Assembly (NCBI GenBank): GCA_019828565.1
Contig: JAHDYR010000003.1
Coordinates: forward strand, 619,409-683,408
Direction: 5' to 3'
DNA from: Carpediemonas membranifera BICM
Lineage: Eukaryota; Protista; Fornicata
DNA length: 64,000 nt
This document shows positions 26,995 to 62,971 of the stretch, in pieces. Numbering within the stretch: position 1 is the first letter of the stretch; every line of letters begins with the position of its first letter. The notes below the pieces were generated by a model that was not told where the DNA came from, made no database searches, and worked only from the letters and a program-made list of their open reading frames with translations. Position numbers and translations under genes: made by a program.

Positions 26995-27183
26995 GGACGG
27001 TGTACTGCGGTTTCGCTCTGCTCTTGAGAAGCTATACATTACATCATGTATCAGCCATAAATGAGAGCTGTGCTGAGTTGACCCAAGTTCAAGACACAGA
27101 CGAGGTGGTGTACACGGGCGTGGCTTCGGCGACACCAAGCTCATCGCGCTGACCGCTATCATTTATAAACCTGGCGCGACGGC

Positions 27184-28278
27184 TCACTCGGACACGATGC
27201 GCTCCTCGACGATGTCCCTGCTGTCCTTGCTGTACTCGCGCATCACCGCGGGCACTGCGCTCGGGGCGAACAGCCCGAGCTCCGTGATGACGCCCGCGAT
27301 GTCGTCCGCGCTGGTGACGTCGTACGCGATGTTGAGCACCTTGGGGCCGTTCTCGACGCCATGGAGCGGCGAGGCGGGGCTGACCATCTGGCCGGCGGGG
27401 TAGAGCTCGTTGTGGGCGACCGAGTCGATCTGCACCTGGTTGCAGAACTTGATCGTCTCGCACACAGCGAGGATCGGCTTGTGGCGGTCGTTCGCGATCA
27501 CAGCGACCATCGCGGTGCCAACCGGCCCGACCATCGCGCCGTTCGCCATGTACGCGTGCGCGCCGAGCAGGATGGTGTCGGCCTCCTTGACGACGCGCGA
27601 GGCCGCCCCGATGAGGCAGTACGAGCATGGGATGCCCGCGCTCTGCAGGCTATGGAGCATGCGGCGGCCGGTGTAGCGAGGCGGCGCGTCGATGACGGTG
27701 ACCTCGAAGTCCTTGCCCTCCTCCTGGCGGGCGCCGATCAGGCCGCGCGCGATGACGCTGTTGTATCCGTACGTCAGCACGCGGTTGCCGTCGTTGACGA
27801 GGCTGACGATGCGCTCGCCGATGAACTGGCCCGCGATGGTGACGCGCTTCGACTGGAGCGTGTCGATGAATTCGAGCAGCTTGTCGCAGCCGCACTCCTT
27901 CGTGACGGTGTCGTCCTTGCGCATCTGGGCCTCGATGTCGCTGATCTCCTGCTTGAGGAGGTCCACGATGTTGTCGACGGGGATGGGCAGCGAGCGGCCC
28001 AGTTCCGCGTTGCTCATGAGCGCGTCGAGCCTGAGGCTGGCCAGGCGATGCCATGGGCTGGCATTAAGCGTGTCTGTGTGCAGCTTCTTGATCGAACCGA
28101 TCATCTCCGCATAGGTCTGCAGGAACGCCGTGATCCGGTCAGTGCACTCGCTGTACACGTCGTTGACGTCTCTGATCGAGAAGCGGGCCGCGGATGCGCT
28201 CCCCTCCTCGCAGGACATGACCGCGGAGCTGGACTTCTGCGGGTCCAGCTCGTGTAGATGCTTGAACATGGCTGGCAT
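27184..28278 (-). CDS. EIF2B4: Translation initiation factor eIF2B subunit delta, copy 1
   Basis: ILLGAHAYMANG..VGTAMVA..CETIKFC..VQIDS..NEL..LNIAYDVT..VITELG..SAVPAVMRE, typical of the delta/GCD2 subunit. Confidence 0.85.
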   Translation of the reverse strand: MPAMFKHLHELDPQKSSSAVMSCEEGSASAARFSIRDVNDVYSECTDRITAFLQTYAEMIGSIKKLHTDTLNASPWHRLASLRLDALMSNAELGRSLPIPVDNIVDLLKQEISDIEAQMRKDDTVTKECGCDKLLEFIDTLQSKRVTIAGQFIGERIVSLVNDGNRVLTYGYNSVIARGLIGARQEEGKDFEVTVIDAPPRYTGRRMLHSLQSAGIPCSYCLIGAASRVVKEADTILLGAHAYMANGAMVGPVGTAMVAVIANDRHKPILAVCETIKFCNQVQIDSVAHNELYPAGQMVSPASPLHGVENGPKVLNIAYDVTSADDIAGVITELGLFAPSAVPAVMREYSKDSRDIVEERIVSE

Positions 28279-28286
28279 CGAAGGAC

Positions 28287-28316
28287 TGTGCTGCGCAGGA
28301 TTAGAATTGTTGAGTC
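28287..28316 (-). repeat. 30-bp direct repeat GACTCAACAATTCTAATCCTGCGCAGCACA (downstream of Fanzor, copy 1)
   Basis: Exact match to 30666-30695, 47687-47716 and 49345-49374. Confidence 0.95.
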
Positions 28317-28416
28317 ACACAGTGATCCAAGCAGCATCAGGATCGCAGTGTGGTTCATCATACTCTATCAATCGTGCGCAGCATATCACGCGCGCTGCAG
28401 CGCGTGTTTGCTCAAC
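28287..28416 (-). ncRNA. Putative Fanzor omegaRNA scaffold, copy 1
   Basis: Immediately 3' of the Fanzor ORF; nested stems; appears identical to 49245-49374. Confidence 0.5.
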
Positions 28417-28424
28417 TTAGCAAG

Positions 28425-30305
28425 TTAATGATAGCGAGGAAGAGCACCTCTCTGGGAGTCGTAGTGGAAAGGAGATTGCTCTATCTGATCTGAAGTTGCA
28501 TCGTGGGTGCACCAAAGGATGTTCTCGCTGGCGCTCTTATCTCGGTGAGAGAGATTGAGAAGTATGTCTCTCTGCTCGGGATGCCGACGTAGCCGTTCAA
28601 CGCGCCATGGAGCTCCCTCGCACGCGGGATTCTGGCAGAGCATGGTGCGGTGTGTGTGCACCACACGTCGGAAGTGTGCTTTGCAGTATGGCCACACGAT
28701 GGAAGTGCGGATTCCGAGACCATCGTGACACTCACGACGACGTTGTGCCGGAGCATGATGCCAGGAAGAGCTCGAGCAAAGTGGCGGTACGGAGCACAGG
28801 AGGGAGTGCCGGCGGAACCGAACAGTGTAGCCCCATACGCGACTTCGAGGTGAATGGGCTCCAGGGGGCGCCCGCCGAGATCATCCAGGAGTTGACGTCC
28901 AGCCCGGGCGAAGTGCTTCAGGCGCAGACAGTGATTGGCAAAAGTCGCACGGCAGAAACACTTTCTAGTCCCCTCGTTGATGATCTGAATCCGATGTTCT
29001 CATGGACAAACCTAATCGACTGTTTGAGAGCCTCTAGACTTGTCGTTTTGAACGATGCTGCGCTCATATTCACGCGTAAAGTGGGGGTGGCAGTGTAGCC
29101 ACACTTAGCGAGTACGCCAGATACACTCTGCCCGTCTGGGCGGCGGATCGTGTAGCCGCCCAGCGACCGAGCACCAAGGTCGAAGCCCATGAGAGCTTGA
29201 ATGTCCGGGGCAGGAGTAGCCTCGGCGTCATCCTGACCGAGCCGAGCCCGCTTGTTGCTGCTACCCTTTTTGTACGTGGGCCGGTCAGCCACCCGACCGC
29301 CACGGTATTTCTCGCGACCCACCCAAACCGTCACAGCAGCAGAGACCCCGTCAGTCTTCACTGAGAGCACTCTGCGGAGCTTGGTGATGTCGCCGTGATC
29401 ACGCTCGTATTCAGCCACCTGCTCGTCGGTCAAATTCTTGGTTGCTGACCAATTCACGTGCACACGCAGGCGCCGCTTCATCGCTGGGGTGAGCGCTGTT
29501 ACTCCGCGCTCGATGGTCATGAACCCAGGCCTGACCGGTGCCATCGGCACGAACGGGACGAGCTTCGGCTCTGGCAGGGCCTGACTGAGCTCGAGGTTCA
29601 CGGCACGAGTGAGTGTGACCAGCTTGGTCACTGCAGCACTCATGCGCGTGACGCACGACAGCACGCCGACGAGGGCCTCGGCCACGGTACCAGTGCGACC
29701 CACCCGTTGCTCCTCGGGCGATGCATGCCATGATCGGCGGCTATGGCGGCAACCTCAGTGTCGAGCTCGCCTAGGGTGTCGAGAAAATCCTGTCGAACAC
29801 CCGGCCGATCATGGAGGAGCGGACGCACCCGTTCTAATACAGCACGAAGACGGGTCAGGTACCCTGGTGACGCGCGCGAGAGCCAGACCCGGGTGACTGT
29901 GGAGTACTCACCCAACCAGCTCTGAAATGGCGCTGCAATTCCAACGTAGGCTTCCCTGAAGTCCCGGACGAGTGGGGTTATGTCAGGGTCCCTCCACATC
30001 GCCAGGTCGCAAATCCACCTGCACCGATCCGCTGCCTTTGCCTTCGACACCTTTTGCTGAGCAATGCTGACGATCTGCGTGAGGACCTCCTCGCCGAACA
30101 GGTTGTCCGTCCTCGGTGGGGTCAACGCGTGCGCAGATGCAGAGACGCACGCAAGCAGGCAAGTGAATGTGTACTTAGCCTGCGTGAAAGAACGCATGCC
30201 GGGTTCAAGATTTCCTCGCCGCGGCGCGTTGTTATCGCCTCCGCCGTTAATCTCGCCAATGGCCTTGTTAACGGAAGCCTTCACCGTGTATATCTTGAAA
30301 GGCAT
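28425..30305 (-). pseudogene. Fanzor1 (TnpB-like RuvC nuclease), full length but frameshifted
   Basis: N-terminus MPFKIYTVKASVNKAI; VKTDGVS; RuvC-I GFDLG; VAYG; RuvC-III HRDKSASENI. Relative to copy 2 it has a 19-nt deletion (~29722), a 2-nt insertion (~28990) and a 1-nt deletion in the EFRTS motif (~28712). Confidence 0.85.
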
Positions 30306-30665
30306 CGGAGTCTATTGAGCTGCCTGCATCGATCATTTCTTTTCAGGGTTCATCAGCTAGCAGCATCCCTCAAAACACAAGAAACCAGCATCATACAACA
30401 CAAAGCGTCTTTACTACCAGCTACAACCGCTTTCCACCACTAGTGTCTCTCACAACAGACTAAGATGACGAAGACGACGACGTCATGAGCTTCAGACGCC
30501 GGCAATGGACGACAGATGAGCGCGTAACAGACGAGCACAGACGCGAAAGAAGACAGCAGCGTTCGACACAGACGATGGACGACGCATCTTTTCGTGCAGA
30601 CCGACGACTGAAAGCACGAAAGCCCGATGGTACAGACGAGGGCTGAAGTGGGTGAGTGGAGGTAG

Positions 30666-30695
30666 TGTGCTGCGCAGGATTAGAATTGTTGAGTC
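30666..30695 (-). repeat. 30-bp direct repeat (upstream of Fanzor, copy 1)
   Basis: Exact match to the other three copies. Confidence 0.95.
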
Positions 30696-31055
30696 TAAAA
30701 GACAGCTTAAGTCACCTTTACATGAATCCTCCACATAAACCTCTAAATACCACAAGGACGCTGTCATAAACTGCTCGGGCCAGACACCGCGCAGGCGGCC
30801 ATGATGCAGACATAGCAAGCTAGAGATATGTACATGGACATAAGAGTACGGCGGGATTCTCGAAAATGTTGGAGACACCAGTAGGGTTGGAAGAGGGTAG
30901 GCGTGAGTTCAGCCGCCTGCCGTCGACGTGTGAGCGCCCCGCGGTAATCCACCGGTGAGAAGTTGTTAGCTCTGTTTATTCATTCTAACTGAAGCTTGCT
31001 TCTAACGAGCGACGCATGCCTGGCCGTAGTGTGACAATGACAGACCCAGCGACAC

Positions 31056-34629: not shown

Positions 34630-34885
34630 GCGGCGGAGGTCTACCGCCCTCAGTAAAGCAGCGAATGAACTCGTCCATCTCCCTCGCGATTCCTGCACAC
34701 AATAACGACTGTCGGACAAGTGAAATCACAGCGACGCACTCAAATATTCTTAAGTTTGGACCATTTACACCACCACGGGTCTAAACCTCCTCACTAAACA
34801 CATTGTTTGACCCTTCAAAAGCACACAGTGTGCAGTTTAATGTCCACAACGACCTAAGAGCTCGCACGCCGGCAAGCTCGCCCCC

Positions 34886-47444: not shown

Positions 47445-47686
47445 GGGTGTAGATGCCATGATAAACGATGTAGTACTCTTTCTGGGCCGGCGGGGAGGTG
47501 ACTCCAGCCAATCGGGCTGAACTTCTCAAGAAAGCAGGCACATCCACATACGGAGTTTAGGGATTGCTATGTCTGCATCATGGCCGCCTGCGCGGTGTCT
47601 GGCCCGAGCAGTTTATGACAGCGTCCTTGTGGTATTTAGAGGTTTATGTGGAGGATTCATGTAAAGGTGACTTAAGCTGTCTTTTA

Positions 47687-47716
47687 GACTCAACAATTCT
47701 AATCCTGCGCAGCACA
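47687..47716 (+). repeat. 30-bp direct repeat (upstream of Fanzor, copy 2), preceded by TTTTA
   Basis: Exact match to 49345-49374. Confidence 0.95.
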
Positions 47717-47864
47717 CTACCTCCACTCACCCACTTCAGCCCTCGTCTGTACCATCGGGCTTTCGTGCTTTCAGTCGTCGGTCTGCACGAAAAGATGCGT
47801 CGTCCATCGTCTGTGTCGAACGCTGCTGTCTTCTTTCGCGTCTGTGCTCGTATGTTACGCGCTC

Positions 47865-49244
47865 GACACCCTAGGCGAGCTCGACACTGAGGTTGCCGCC
47901 ATAGCCGCCGATCATGGCATGCATCATCGTCAAATGCATGCATCGCCCGAGGGGCAACGGGTGGGTCGCACTGGTACCGTGGCCGAGGCTCTCGTCGGCG
48001 TGCTGTCGTGCGTCACGCGCATGAGTGCTGCAGTGACCAAGCTGGTCACACTCACTCGTGCCGTGAACCTCGAGCTCAGTCAGGCCCTGCCAGAGCCGAA
48101 GCTCGTCCCGTTCGTGCCGATGGCACCGGTCAGGCCTGGGTTCATGACCATCGAGCGCGGAGTAACAGCGCTCACCCCAGCGATGAAGCGGCGCCTGCGT
48201 GTGCACGTGAATTGGTCAGCAACCAAGAATTTGACCGACGAGCAGGTTGATAGATACGAGCGTGATCACGGCGACATCACCAAGCTCCGCAGAGTGCTCT
48301 CAGTGAAGACTGACGGGGTCTCTGCTGCTGTGACGGTTTGGGTGGGTCGCGAGAAATACCGTGGCGGTCGGGTGGCTGACCGGCCCACGTACAAAAAGGG
48401 TAGCAGCAACAAGCGGGCTCGGCTCGGTCAGGATGACGCCGAGGCTACTCCTGCCCCGGACATTCAAGCTCTCATGGGCTTCGACCTTGGTGCTCGGTCG
48501 CTGGGCGGCTACACGATCCGCCGCCCAGACGGGCAGAGTGTATCTGGCGTACTCGCTAAGTGTGGCTACACTGCCACCCCCACTTTCCGCGTGAATATGA
48601 GCGTAGCATCGTTCAAAACGACAAGTCTAGAGGCTCTCAAACAGTCGATTAGGTTTGTCCATGAGAACATCGTTCAGATCATCAACGAGGGGACTAGAAA
48701 GTGTTTCTGCCGTGCGACTTTTGCCAATCACTGTCTGCGCCTGAAGCACTTCGCCCGGGCTGGACGTCAACTCCTGGATGATCTCGGCGGGCGCCCCCCG
48801 GAGCCCATTCACCTCGAAGTCGCGTATGGGGCTGCACTGTTCGGTTCCGCCGGCACTCCCTCCTGTGCTCCGTACCGCCACTTTGCTCGAGCTCTTCCTG
48901 GCATCATGCTCCGGCACAACGTCGTCGTGAGTGTCACGATGGTCTCGGAATTCCGCACTTCCATCGTGTGGCCATACTGCAAAGCACACTTCCGACGTGT
49001 GGTGCACACACACCGCACCATGCTCTGCCAGAATCCCGCGTGCGAGGGAGCTCCATGGCGCGTTGAACGGCTACGTCGGCATCCCGAGCAGAGAGACATA
49101 CTTCTCAATCTCTCTCACCGAGATAAGAGCGCCAGCGAGAACATCCTTTGGTGCACCTTCGATGCAACTTCAGATCAGATAGAGCAATCTCCTTTCCACT
49201 ACGACTCCCAGAGAGGTGCTTCCTCGCTATCATTAACTTGCTAA
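47865..49244 (+). pseudogene. Fanzor1 nuclease, N-terminally truncated, with an open C-terminal 459 codons
   Basis: SVKTDGVS; RuvC-I MGFDLG; EVAYGAALF; RuvC-II VSEFRTS; zinc-finger-like WPYC..CQNPAC; RuvC-III HRDKSASENI. Confidence 0.88.
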
Positions 49245-49374
49245 GTTGAGCAAACACGCGCTGCAGCGCGCGTGATATGCTGCGCACGATTGATAGAGTA
49301 TGATGAACCACACTGCGATCCTGATGCTGCTTGGATCACTGTGTGACTCAACAATTCTAATCCTGCGCAGCACA
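49245..49374 (+). ncRNA. Putative Fanzor omegaRNA scaffold, copy 2
   Basis: Stems 49255-61/49268-74; 49278-91/49359-72; 49309-13/49341-45 with 49317-21/49333-37. Possible pseudoknot 49245-50/49347-52. Confidence 0.5.
49345..49374 (+). repeat. 30-bp direct repeat (downstream of Fanzor, 8 nt before the eIF2B-delta ATG)
   Basis: Exact match to 47687-47716. Confidence 0.95.
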
Positions 49375-49382
49375 GTCCTTCG

Positions 49383-50477
49383 ATGCCAGCCATGTTCAAG
49401 CATCTACACGAGCTGGACCCGCAGAAGTCCAGCTCCGCGGTCATGTCCTGCGAGGAGGGGAGCGCATCCGCGGCCCGCTTCTCGATCAGAGACGTCAACG
49501 ACGTGTACAGCGAGTGCACTGACCGGATCACGGCGTTCCTGCAGACCTATGCGGAGATGATCGGTTCGATCAAGAAGCTGCACACAGACACGCTTAATGC
49601 CAGCCCATGGCATCGCCTGGCCAGCCTCAGGCTCGACGCGCTCATGAGCAACGCGGAACTGGGCCGCTCGCTGCCCATCCCCGTCGACAACATCGTGGAC
49701 CTCCTCAAGCAGGAGATCAGCGACATCGAGGCCCAGATGCGCAAGGACGACACCGTCACGAAGGAGTGCGGCTGCGACAAGCTGCTCGAATTCATCGACA
49801 CGCTCCAGTCGAAGCGCGTCACCATCGCGGGCCAGTTCATCGGCGAGCGCATCGTCAGCCTCGTCAACGACGGCAACCGCGTGCTGACGTACGGATACAA
49901 CAGCGTCATCGCGCGCGGCCTGATCGGCGCCCGCCAGGAGGAGGGCAAGGACTTCGAGGTCACCGTCATCGACGCGCCGCCTCGCTACACCGGCCGCCGC
50001 ATGCTCCATAGCCTGCAGAGCGCGGGTATCCCATGCTCGTACTGCCTCATCGGGGCGGCCTCGCGCGTCGTCAAGGAGGCCGACACCATCCTGCTCGGCG
50101 CGCACGCGTACATGGCGAACGGCGCGATGGTCGGGCCGGTTGGCACCGCGATGGTCGCTGCGATCGCGAACGACCGCCACAAGCCGATCCTCGCTGTGTG
50201 CGAGACGATCAAGTTCTGCAACCAGGTGCAGATCGACTCGGTCGCCCACAACGAGCTCTACCCCGCCGGCCAGATGGTCAGCCCCGCCTCGCCGCTCCAT
50301 GGCGTCGAGAACGGCCCCAAGGTGCTCAACATCGCGTACGACGTCACCAGCGCGGACGACATCGCGGGCGTCATCACGGAGCTCGGGCTGTTCGCCCCGA
50401 GCGCAGTGCCCGCGGTGATGCGCGAGTACAGCAAGGACAGCCGGGACATCGTCGAGGAGCGCATCGTGTCCGAGTGA
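49383..50477 (+). CDS. EIF2B4: Translation initiation factor eIF2B subunit delta, copy 2
   Basis: Same 364 aa as copy 1 apart from one V/A change (MVAVIAND vs MVAAIAND). Confidence 0.85.
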   Translation: MPAMFKHLHELDPQKSSSAVMSCEEGSASAARFSIRDVNDVYSECTDRITAFLQTYAEMIGSIKKLHTDTLNASPWHRLASLRLDALMSNAELGRSLPIPVDNIVDLLKQEISDIEAQMRKDDTVTKECGCDKLLEFIDTLQSKRVTIAGQFIGERIVSLVNDGNRVLTYGYNSVIARGLIGARQEEGKDFEVTVIDAPPRYTGRRMLHSLQSAGIPCSYCLIGAASRVVKEADTILLGAHAYMANGAMVGPVGTAMVAAIANDRHKPILAVCETIKFCNQVQIDSVAHNELYPAGQMVSPASPLHGVENGPKVLNIAYDVTSADDIAGVITELGLFAPSAVPAVMREYSKDSRDIVEERIVSE

Positions 50478-50743
50478 GCCGTCGCGCCAGGTTTATAAAT
50501 GTGCTTGCCGGAATCGATGCCTCTGTCAGTTGGAGCAGAAGAAACAACCTGGTTCGCGGCGTTGTCGACTGTGCGACCACGACGACCGCGGCCCCTTTCA
50601 CAACCAGTCTTGTCCCGTTGTATTGGCGCTCTCGACTTGCCTGATTGCGGTGTAAACGAATTACATGGCCGCCGTAAATTGCATAAATGGAGTGAGCAGT
50701 GAAAGGCGCGTTCCTTGGATCCGAACCTACAGCTCAATACGCC

Positions 50744-54386: not shown

Positions 54387-55029
54387 GGCGGATAGGATCT
54401 CTAAATACGCGGTTAACGGCGGAGGCTGTGAGGGCAGCCCGATATGTGAAGAGGAGGACAGGCTCTTTTATTTGGCCCATTGTCCCTGGGTAAAATTTGA
54501 GAGGGAACAATGAGACACTGGGTTGGCTTGGCACAACGAGGCGCGGCTGTGCATGTCTCGGTTTATTTGCTACTTGCACTTACACTTTGCAAACTCTTCG
54601 TGAAGTATCATAGAGTGCACAGTGCAAGCACTGCGTCTCTCCACTTCAATTAGCTTGCCCGGAGGCGAAGACTAGCGGCTGGTTAGCCGTAATTGGTGTA
54701 TTGGGGTTATAGTTGGGAAGACGGGCTGGAGGTCTTGGATTTCTGAAAGCACTGGCTTGATACTGTGCATCCGTCATGAGGCCGCAATCCAAGATGTTCT
54801 GTGCAGCAGTCTTGTCTCTGTGGGAGAGATTGAGCGGCAGAAGGGGCAGACGAGTGAGATACTGCAGTCTTCCGATACTGCTTTATATAAGCTGCACAAT
54901 GACTCAGGGGTGCAGGGCAAATATGACCCAATCAATTGGTCACCACAGCTGCCTCCTCTCCCGGTGGTTGATGACCCCCGACGATGATCGATTCGCAGTT
55001 TAAGATCGATCGAATTCGACGTCGCGTCA

Positions 55030-59957: not shown

Positions 59958-60695
59958 CTACTGCATCTCGTTGACATACGCTGTGATACGAGCTACTGGA
60001 ATCTGCCGCACCTTGTCGGCCAGGCTCTGGATCACGGACTTCAACCAGGGCAGCCGGTCGCCCCAGGACGTCTCCAGCGTCAGAGAGGTTATCGGATTGG
60101 GTGTCTTGAGCGCGGCGCTGGCCTCCATCGAGAACTCGGTCAGCCCGGAGTCCGAGAAGTCCACTGCCTTCACCTGGCCGTCGCAATCGGTCACCTCGAT
60201 GGCAAGGGCCCGCTTCTCGAGTATATGCTTGATCCGAGTGGGCAGGTCGACCATGTCATCGATCTCGAGGCGGTGCTTCACGCTGAGCTCGACCTCGGCG
60301 TCAACACTGAGGGACGAGAGGGTCACCGAGAGTGGGATGCGGGTCTGCTTGGAGAGGAGCGTCGGTGCGGTCCCCATAGCCCTGTGCATGAAGGACGAGG
60401 CCGGCGTCGCGGCGGGGGCGGCGTTGGACTTGATGAAGCCCGACACACGGCACCAAGCGTCACCGCAGTATCTAAGGTGGAATACCGCCTGGAGAGAGTC
60501 GAAATCGGCGGCTATAACGTCAACAATGTCCAGTTCTGGCGGCTTATGGCCCAAATGAAGCTCATCAACGCGGATTGGGCCAGCAATGATGGTGGTGTCC
60601 TTTTCAATGAACTCGTTGAGCTTGGACACTATCATTTCATCGACATTCTGAAGGATAATGTCCTCTATCGCCGTCCAGTTGAATTGAAAGCTCAT
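59958..60695 (-). CDS. SMP-domain lipid-transfer protein, ERMES Mdm34/Mdm12-like
   Basis: MSFQFNW..IIAGPIRVDELHLGHKPPELDIVDV..FHLRYCGDA..IPLSVTLS. Confidence 0.65.
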   Translation of the reverse strand: MSFQFNWTAIEDIILQNVDEMIVSKLNEFIEKDTTIIAGPIRVDELHLGHKPPELDIVDVIAADFDSLQAVFHLRYCGDAWCRVSGFIKSNAAPAATPASSFMHRAMGTAPTLLSKQTRIPLSVTLSSLSVDAEVELSVKHRLEIDDMVDLPTRIKHILEKRALAIEVTDCDGQVKAVDFSDSGLTEFSMEASAALKTPNPITSLTLETSWGDRLPWLKSVIQSLADKVRQIPVARITAYVNEMQ

Positions 60696-61582: not shown

Positions 61583-61650
61583 TCGGACTCCGGGCTGACC
61601 GAGTTCTCGATGGAGGCCAGTGCCGCGCTCAAGACACCCAACCCGATAAC
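61583..61650 (+). repeat. 68-bp inverted duplicate of 60088-60155 (internal part of the Mdm34-like gene)
   Basis: 66/68 identity; encodes SDSGLTEFSMEASAALKTPNPIT. Confidence 0.9.
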
Positions 61651-62275
61651 TTCGCAAGCAGTAGTCGATAACTTGGCTTGGTTGGCTCTAGCTTGGCACT
61701 CGTGCGGCGGCCAAAATATTTGGCGGCCCAATCACAGGATCGCGTGCGGTGGAGTCAAGCGGTATCGTCAGCATTTAGCGAGCCCCGGTTGAGGTTGTTC
61801 TGTTTGAATTCAAACTTTTACTTTCATTTCTTTTTGGGCTTTTTAGGGTTACCGGGCACTCCTCCCCTAGTGCCCGGCCCCGACACGAGGCTGTCCCGGC
61901 ACCCGAGATAAACTCTGACCCGCGGTGATTTGACATGGATCACCAATAGCTTGTATCCGGTCCGACAGGCTAAGAACCGACACAGAGCAAAGGCTAACTC
62001 ACTTCCTTTATCTTACTCTCTCCCGGAATATCACGGTAAGTGTTCATAAGCGACATCCCTGGCATGCGGGCCCATTGCTTGCCGTTCACATCTTCGTTCT
62101 GGTGCTTGAGCAGGTATCCGAACCGGTCAATCCAATATTTGCCAGCGTTCGAGAGGACCACCGGGATTGATTTGATTAAGATATATATGCCCATTGATTC
62201 GATCCAACCAATTGATTTATATTTATAGCCCGATTGATTTGCCTTAACCTGCCAGAAAACACTCTTGCGCACACG

Positions 62276-62971
62276 ATGGTCTTATCTGAGTATCGCACAG
62301 TTTCTAATCGAGCTTTGGTGCAGCGGCTACTGGAAGCAGCTGGTGCTCGCATCGCGAACGGCGACAACGTCGGATGCGTCATCGATCCGGCAGATGAAGG
62401 AAAACCCTTTGTCAACTGTGTCCTCATGATTAATGGTGAGAAATACATCACACTTAGATGGAATGAGGAAGGAGGAAAGCTGTACTGCACCAACGGTGTT
62501 CACAAGGCCTCTTTCCTTGAGATCCTGGACAATGTGATTGCTGAAGTCGAAGCCGAAGATGCTGCTCATCACAACGCGACCCTCAGCCCAACAGCCAGAG
62601 AGCGTGTGGAAGCTCGTCGTGCCCAAGCTGCAGCCCAAGTTGCAGCCCACGCCGCAGCCATCGAGGAAGCCCGTGTTGCAGCCCGCGCCGCAGCCATCGA
62701 GGAAGCCCGTGTTGCAGCCCGCGCCGCAGCCATCGAGGAAGCCCGCCCTGAAGACCGCGCTGCAGCCATCGAGGAAGCCCGCCCTGAAGACCGCGCTGCA
62801 GCCATCGAGGAAGCCCGCCCTGAAGACCGCGCTGCAGCCATCGAGGAAGCCCGTGTTGCAGCTCTCGAAGCAGCACACGCTGCAGCTCTCCGTGCACCTC
62901 CCGGTGATATTGACATGGAAGATTTCGAACGGGATCTCCAAGAGCTGCGCCTCAGATACAACTTAGGTTAA
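62276..62971 (+). CDS. Hypothetical protein with 12-aa Ala/Glu/Arg repeats
   Basis: ATG-initiated ORF with GATAAA after the stop. Codon usage (GAA, GCA, GCT) is unlike the host genes. Confidence 0.55.
   Translation: MVLSEYRTVSNRALVQRLLEAAGARIANGDNVGCVIDPADEGKPFVNCVLMINGEKYITLRWNEEGGKLYCTNGVHKASFLEILDNVIAEVEAEDAAHHNATLSPTARERVEARRAQAAAQVAAHAAAIEEARVAARAAAIEEARVAARAAAIEEARPEDRAAAIEEARPEDRAAAIEEARPEDRAAAIEEARVAALEAAHAAALRAPPGDIDMEDFERDLQELRLRYNLG
62651..62863 (+). repeat. 36-bp tandem repeat, 6 units, 2 variants (A,A,B,B,B,A)
   Basis: Unit GCYGCAGCCATCGAGGAAGCCCG followed by TGTTGCAGCCCGC or CCCTGAAGACCGC. Confidence 0.95.

Follow-up and report, generated by a model that had tools for sequence, protein, structure and literature searches.

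Among long terminal repeat (LTR) retrotransposons, Tf1 and Ty3 are promoter-targeted Ty3/Gypsy elements, and terminal-repeat retrotransposons in miniature (TRIM-like elements) are non-autonomous LTR elements. CRE/SLACS-like elements with a restriction-like endonuclease (RLE) are target-specific non-LTR retrotransposons, and Tx1L, found in Tx1D, is a long interspersed nuclear element (LINE) aimed at another transposon. Fanzors have been described in many DNA transposons (PMC3627910), and according to a 2026 review no retrotransposon is known to encode one (PMC13565253). We analyzed 64,000 nucleotides of the Carpediemonas membranifera genome (24.2 Mb, 69 contigs; C4:619409-683408, hereafter the window), in which a Fanzor-like gene stands directly before the gene for eIF2B-delta and the pair occurs twice. 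The Fanzor-like gene lies in a mobile element whose family has LTR-like ends and is a new form of mobile DNA bearing a Fanzor. The adjoining eIF2B-delta gene is very probably a bystander; the Fanzor-eIF2B pairing itself is ordinary and incidental, and the interest lies in the element family. A literature search returned no paper linking Fanzor with Carpediemonas.

The two copies form an inverted duplication: copy A spans 47564-50501 on the forward strand, copy B spans 27160-30818 on the reverse strand, and they align at 98.5-99.7%. In both, the Fanzor-like open reading frame (ORF) is followed by a structured spacer (49245-49374 in copy A) and then by eIF2B-delta, and identity between the copies stops 2 nt past the TATAAA signal at 50494-50499. 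This arrangement, together with the identity and intactness of eIF2B-delta, had been proposed in an earlier note made from the window alone and was borne out. The gene matched PF01008 (E 3.5e-46), and its best solved-structure matches were delta subunits. It is an intact host gene both in copy A (49383-50477, forward strand) and in copy B (27184-28278, reverse strand), which differs from A by 3 substitutions and one amino-acid change. In the genome, eIF2B-delta was found only in the two window copies.

The duplicated block is comprised of the eIF2B-delta gene, 64 bp of host DNA to the left of the element, and the resident insertion. The 64 bp are the native upstream region of eIF2B-delta (47564-47627, forward strand; 30755-30818, reverse strand, in copy B). 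Neither their inclusion in the block nor the repeats that bracket the Fanzor unit had been noticed in the earlier note. In copy A, the 5-bp target-site duplication GTCCT stands at 47623-47627 and 49375-49379 (forward strand), the right copy marking the beginning of the host flank and of the predicted guide. The 5-bp duplication and a 30-nt direct repeat bracket the Fanzor unit, and because of the placement of the duplication eIF2B-delta lies outside the element, with its start 8 nt beyond the element right end. Element copy B is full length (28287-30754, reverse strand), with repeats at 30695-30666 and 28316-28287, GTCCT on both sides, and the target motif described below at 30776-30765; its Fanzor gene runs from 30305 to about 28425 and contains three frameshifts. 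A and B were sister copies in a tree of 34 element copies, and changes private to the pair included GFDLG in place of GFDPG, WPYC in place of CPYC, and a 6-nt deletion in the RNA region.

The earlier note had suggested that eIF2B-delta might be cargo; neither this nor a specific Fanzor-eIF2B system was supported. When copy B was searched against the genome, the Fanzor part matched in at least 40 places, with matches stopping at the same two points and continuing into eIF2B-delta only in the window copies. At least 40 Fanzor copies thus occur without eIF2B-delta, a result that the note itself had named as one that would refute its proposal. A Fanzor element carrying eIF2B-delta as a selected translation-control gene would agree with both gene copies following the element intact, and with pieces of the eIF2B-delta locus flanks lying beside two other element copies. 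It is nevertheless scarcely credible: the 5-bp duplication excludes the gene, which is absent from all other copies, neither Fanzor ORF is intact, and the outer junctions of the duplicated block have neither element-like ends nor the target motif. The block is a local rearrangement.

The flank pieces lie on two other contigs. The eIF2B-delta upstream flank has a third copy at C8:827809-828224, known as coordinates only, where a longer LINE piece and then a terminal repeat come after it and the gene is absent. At the right end of element copy L012 (C13:130013-130032), the sequence after the element begins with 12 nt from the eIF2B-delta leader, roughly the length of one guide. The flanks of the eIF2B-delta locus were therefore copied at least three times, and the leader carried over at L012 could reflect an RNA-templated step. 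The window element, which has these 12 nt of flank in common with L012, was considered as its donor; this was not supported by the tree, in which L012 groups with L020.

That the second copy in the window is an assembly artefact or a haplotype was judged very improbable. The host parts are nearly identical, with no difference in the left flank and 3 across the gene, and no public contig spans the whole stretch, but different host genes flank A and B and each copy has distinct deletions. Public contigs cover eIF2B-delta and leave the downstream intergenic DNA uncovered; at 50027 and 50161 they carry the B allele, and they include a 3' end of A type that runs into the flank of A to 50510. These contigs are of uncertain type, possibly RNA, and their reads may share the source of the assembly; they fit both copies being real and the gene being transcribed, and prove neither.

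The other proposal of the earlier note, that a Fanzor programmed against the eIF2B-delta promoter had inserted there and was then amplified with the gene, stood in part. Insertion and subsequent amplification were supported, while the programming is only trivially true, because the predicted guide of every copy is its own right flank. As the ends, the target duplication and the target geometry show, a non-autonomous 2.4-kb element inserted between the promoter motif and the start codon of the single eIF2B-delta gene, and a small RLE-type LINE piece lies within its left end. The gene, the 64 bp of upstream DNA and the element are duplicated in inverted orientation 17 kb away, and both Fanzor genes have decayed; the duplication would have followed the insertion, through an ordinary local rearrangement, and the separate decay of the two Fanzor genes would have come after it. 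The pairing is accidental in that the element landed in a promoter and was then duplicated with the gene.

The element is 2.4 kb long and carries only the Fanzor gene and an omegaRNA-like RNA. It starts with TGTG and ends with CACA (TG...CA). A terminal 17-mer had 223 matches in the genome, as compared with 0 for the reversed control, and of the 46 loci listed, about 22 had the first 5 bp of the right flank repeated exactly, directly ahead of the left TG(/AG) end. The left terminal unit is 41 bp, bounded by TG...CA, and the right end repeats its final 30-34 nt imperfectly in direct orientation. In copy A the left unit (47628-47716, forward strand; 41 bp if uninterrupted) is split by a LINE remnant and contains the 30-nt repeat at 47687-47716; a purine-rich, polypurine-tract-like stretch (47717-47737, reverse strand) lies directly before the terminal TG. 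The right 30-nt repeat (49345-49374, forward strand) is at once the element right end and the 3' strand of the predicted closing stem of the RNA. Solo terminal units with their own 5-bp duplication were found at four loci (L034, L036, L040, and L043). A second Fanzor family, with about 45% protein identity to the first, has the same layout, comprising a 43-bp unit and its own purine tract. Many element copies have internal deletions and filler DNA and keep both ends.

The 30-nt repeat was also considered as a long target duplication and rejected, being the same in all copies, while the true duplication is 5 bp. A Helitron or IS607-type carrier was rejected on the TG...CA ends and fixed 5-bp duplications. 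Two loci (L046 and L049) were chimeras of family-1 and family-2 end sequences, which suggests template switching between families. Elsewhere in the window, a 30-nt piece of the family-2 left terminal unit (34795-34825, reverse strand) lies beside an inverted target motif.

The five protein motifs listed in the earlier note (TDGVS, GxD(L/P)G, VAYG, EFRTS, and RDxxAxxNI) were all found, and a Fanzor/TnpB-type protein was supported by an Atlas search, Pfam and fold-search comparisons. The Atlas language-model and structure search gave a feature score of 0.97 and a TM of 0.51-0.59 to Cas12f1-like TNB / DUF8286 clusters (eukaryotic and giant-virus). The Pfam match was weak (PF07282, E 0.047-0.11), and in a fold search from a poor AlphaFold model SpuFz ranked first (E 0.05). 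The acidic triad of RuvC I, II and III is kept in three subfamilies as GFD(P/L)G, SE(F/D)RT, and HRDK(S/T)A. In Fanzors, the catalytic Glu stands about six residues ahead of the zinc finger (PMC13565253); this short spacing is present in the natural intact copy L010 (642 aa), which served as the reference, as SEFRTSIVCPYC, and is likewise kept in three subfamilies. Searches of Pfam, solved structures and large sequence libraries returned no named Fanzor relative, phmmer and hmmsearch found no sequence relative outside Carpediemonas membranifera, and a metagenome pattern scan gave no match.

Both Fanzor ORFs in the window are broken, which the earlier note had missed. Copy A is a remnant (47844-49244, forward strand) that lacks 737 nt, corresponding to about residues 1-184 of intact L010, and therefore matches residues 185-637 of the reference; it retains the RuvC D/E/D residues. 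Copy B has a 19-nt deletion at 29728, a 2-nt insertion at 28991 and a 1-nt deletion at 28711. The first zinc-finger Cys was lost in both window copies, having been replaced by Trp in copy A. The window also contains what is left of a copy from a third Fanzor subfamily (P0014 type), its 3' end included (54600-54860, reverse strand), and the target motif lies within that end; at L007 a family-1 element is inserted in a third-subfamily (P0014 type) 3' end. The Fanzor-family protein P0001 is named ‘cytosine deaminase’ in public databases, a name for which no support was found here.

The omegaRNA-like structure proposed 3' of the Fanzor ORF was supported by folding. In copy A, the predicted scaffold (49237-49374, forward strand), which includes the private 6-nt deletion, forms two hairpins and a long terminal stem-loop, and the spacer at 49245-49374 had a fold z of -3.55. 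Across two families, the sequence between the stop codon and the right end folded far better than shuffles (z -3.45 to -5.88), with a predicted three-part layout common to both, in which two hairpins accompany a long stem-loop and the right repeat closes the latter. No compensatory changes in the predicted structure were seen within family 1, and an Rfam search of the RNA region returned nothing significant. The right repeat was considered as a self-targeting guide and judged unlikely, as it forms the closing stem. The predicted guide is instead the right flank, which varies from copy to copy (29 different flanks in 31 copies). The predicted guide of the window copy would match the eIF2B-delta leader, just as any copy matches its own flank.

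No conserved target-adjacent motif (TAM) was found beside the predicted guide: at 30 sites, positions -10 to -1 relative to the insertion held at most 0.44 bit, and a conserved motif sat at -22 to -11. The 10 bp to the left of the insertion are nearly information-free, and so a standard adjacent TAM is missing. In its RuvC D/E/D residues and catalytic Glu close before a CCCC zinc finger, the protein is like Fanzor1 in non-autonomous eukaryotic elements (SpuFz1; Bao and Jurka, 2013, PMC3627910). The 642-aa intact copy, the structured RNA from stop codon to right end, and the variable flank as predicted guide are also like Fanzor1 elements (PMC3627910). Unlike those elements (PMC3627910), the family has no phmmer or hmmsearch relative outside Carpediemonas membranifera, a random 5-bp duplication, no conserved guide-adjacent TAM, and direct instead of inverted terminal repeats. 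By analogy with the Fanzor family, intact family members probably form an RNA-guided nuclease guided by the right flank of each copy. The random target duplications and the lack of an adjacent TAM imply that this very divergent Fanzor follows an unusual rule of targeting, and the intact L010 copy is available for assay.

Both families insert in one orientation only, downstream of a motif with the consensus GYGCASTTTAWG. In the window, this motif is at 47606-47617 (forward strand) and ends 10 bp before the element. Among 35 family-1 sites, the spacing was 10 bp in 30 and 9-11 bp in all 35. The motif occurred 12 times, in both orientations, at 10-63 nt upstream of 51 long ORFs, as compared with one occurrence in coding controls of equal size. 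GYGCASTTTAWG is probably a host promoter element. Each right repeat contains an inverted copy of the motif, with scores of 9.3 and 12.7 that fall inside the range of real sites. At the window locus, this inverted motif is about 24 nt from the eIF2B-delta ATG, and its distance to the MFK start is about that of the native motif. The inverted motif may keep the host gene on by promoter replacement. An essential single-copy gene has tolerated an insertion just upstream of its start codon, and replacement of its promoter by the element end is directly testable.

The element encodes no mobilizing enzyme. Its TG...CA ends and purine tract, together with the solo units and the target duplications of 5 bp, suggest an LTR-type integrase. 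In two integrase-coding Gypsy elements (L023 and L028) the end consists of a purine tract plus a TG...CA repeat of about 50 bp that contains the same motif, and the LTRs of the resident Gypsy elements are very short with a promoter-like motif (about 50 bp in L023, about 50 bp in L028, and about 115 bp in L038). L028 and L038 are chromodomain-like. Since resident Ty3/Gypsy elements have similarly short LTRs, a Ty3/Gypsy-type integrase acting in trans is the best guess for the mobilizing enzyme, and we regard it as somewhat probable. The family is like TRIM-like elements, Tf1 and Ty3 in that it has TG...CA ends, solo units and a purine tract ahead of the TG, duplicates 5 bp of its target, and inserts at a fixed distance from a host promoter element. 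It is unlike them in its units of only 41-43 bp, non-identical at the two ends, in showing no primer-binding site on inspection by eye, and in its antisense Fanzor cargo, undocumented for retrotransposons (PMC13565253). In addition, twelve pairs of the family-2 left-end 17-mer were found 4551-4555 bp apart in direct orientation (C1:1344448-1349017, C3:174197-178766, C11:577555-582124 and nine more), known as coordinates only; these repeat-bounded 4.55-kb pairs are a candidate autonomous partner.

An integrase of this type, tethered to the promoter motif, would integrate the element family in trans, and the fixed orientation would place the Fanzor gene downstream of the host motif, with the right-repeat motif perhaps sustaining the host gene. 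The whole account (promoter insertion, local duplication and Ty3-type mobilization) appears reasonably probable. In its favor, at a polymorphic site 6 nt from the end the two repeats agreed in 18 of 22 elements against 11.3 expected, in a concordance test that ignores the relatedness of copies. Several observations weigh against it. Within their first 11 nt the two terminal units show fixed differences, which canonical LTR replication would equalize, and the 30-nt repeats were identical in only 7 of 22 elements against 5.2 expected, no more often than by chance. No TGG-type tRNA primer-binding site was seen by eye beside the other unit, and none of the best 150 reverse transcriptase (RT) or integrase matches fell inside the 4.55-kb pairs. 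The motif-enrichment sample was small, with 2 of the 12 occurrences element-associated. The two AlphaFold models were poor (mean predicted local distance difference test 38 and 33), and the fold search is therefore a hint only. Because the identical-LTR test failed, the element was not filed as an LTR retrotransposon.

The fixed differences between terminal units and the non-identical repeats would be expected if the bystander story involved instead a cut-and-paste DNA transposon with TG...CA ends as carrier. Such a carrier might be Ginger2/TDD-, IS481EU- or Mu-like, or it might use an LTR integrase on DNA ends with no reverse transcription step, and the Fanzor would serve in restorative homing. 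The many copies that have lost internal sequence and gained filler DNA with both ends intact agree with this explanation, as do the Fanzors known from DNA transposons and the point that homing benefits only elements that excise (PMC13565253). We consider it unlikely, given a terminal inverted repeat of only about 4-6 bp and given that two families have direct repeats, a purine tract and solo units; in a non-exhaustive search, no such transposase was linked to the ends.

The left unit of many copies is interrupted by a LINE. In the window, the 3' remnant of an RLE-type non-LTR retrotransposon lies antisense at 47641-47682 (reverse strand), between TTTAGA hexamers at 47635 and 47683. The segment between the two hexamers is 42 bp in the window and more than 400 bp in L018, and a LINE piece was present in 19 of the 27 Fanzor-selected copies that keep a left end. 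A near-complete, damaged LINE was found at L053:5250-8055 (reverse strand), with one stop and a frameshift, bounded by a 9-bp direct repeat; a search for other long copies found none. Its RT matched PF00078 (E 4.8e-10) with non-LTR-type RTs as relatives, and by inspection it has a CCHC finger (CPLC...HLRSC) and an RLE-type motif (ADLFV...VIDVT...K). L048 and L050 have one truncation and one deletion in common, while their flanks and duplications differ; as these composites sit at different sites, elements remained mobile after LINE insertion. At L035, three tandem 2080-bp units have their breakpoint inside the LINE piece.

The composites L048 and L050, with the same truncation at different sites and with different duplications, would also suit the RLE LINE as mobilizer. 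The LINE would prime at the promoter motif and switch template onto an antisense Fanzor RNA, giving a unit like a short interspersed nuclear element with a LINE tail. The LINE 3' end at the left terminus in the 19 copies, with stutters there, the strict insertion orientation, and the flank carry-over at C8 and C13 point the same way. This is improbable, as element copies without the LINE piece use the same host target: L012, L020, L021 and L025, as well as the second family, keep the target geometry. The LINE piece also has its own 6-bp flanking repeat, and in L038 the LINE has inserted on its own into a Gypsy LTR, with a duplication of 6 bp and a different spacing. The element right end is moreover precise and not truncated. 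We read the LINE as a site-preferring parasite of the element rather than its mobilizer. It is like CRE/SLACS and Tx1L in its RT, CCHC finger and PD-(D/E)xK-like motif, variable 5' truncation, fixed site and short duplication. It is unlike them in that it inserts into the 41-bp left end of a Fanzor element (in one case into a Gypsy LTR), and in that the element it enters can still move afterwards.

It is possible, though rather doubtful, that all these features belong to one system. In it, a Fanzor would spread by a retrotransposon pathway, with a Ty3-type integrase acting on miniature LTR-like ends, and one of these ends would also serve as the closing stem of the omegaRNA. The Fanzor would target host promoters and work without an adjacent TAM, perhaps reading the motif 10 bp away, and a site-specific RLE LINE would exploit its left end.

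Two further features were observed in the window. A 71-nt inverted repeat (60085-60155 and 61583-61653), 96% complementary and with one arm in a coding region, resembles a small duplicated gene fragment, and a tandem array with a 12/24-nt period occupies 62596-62930.

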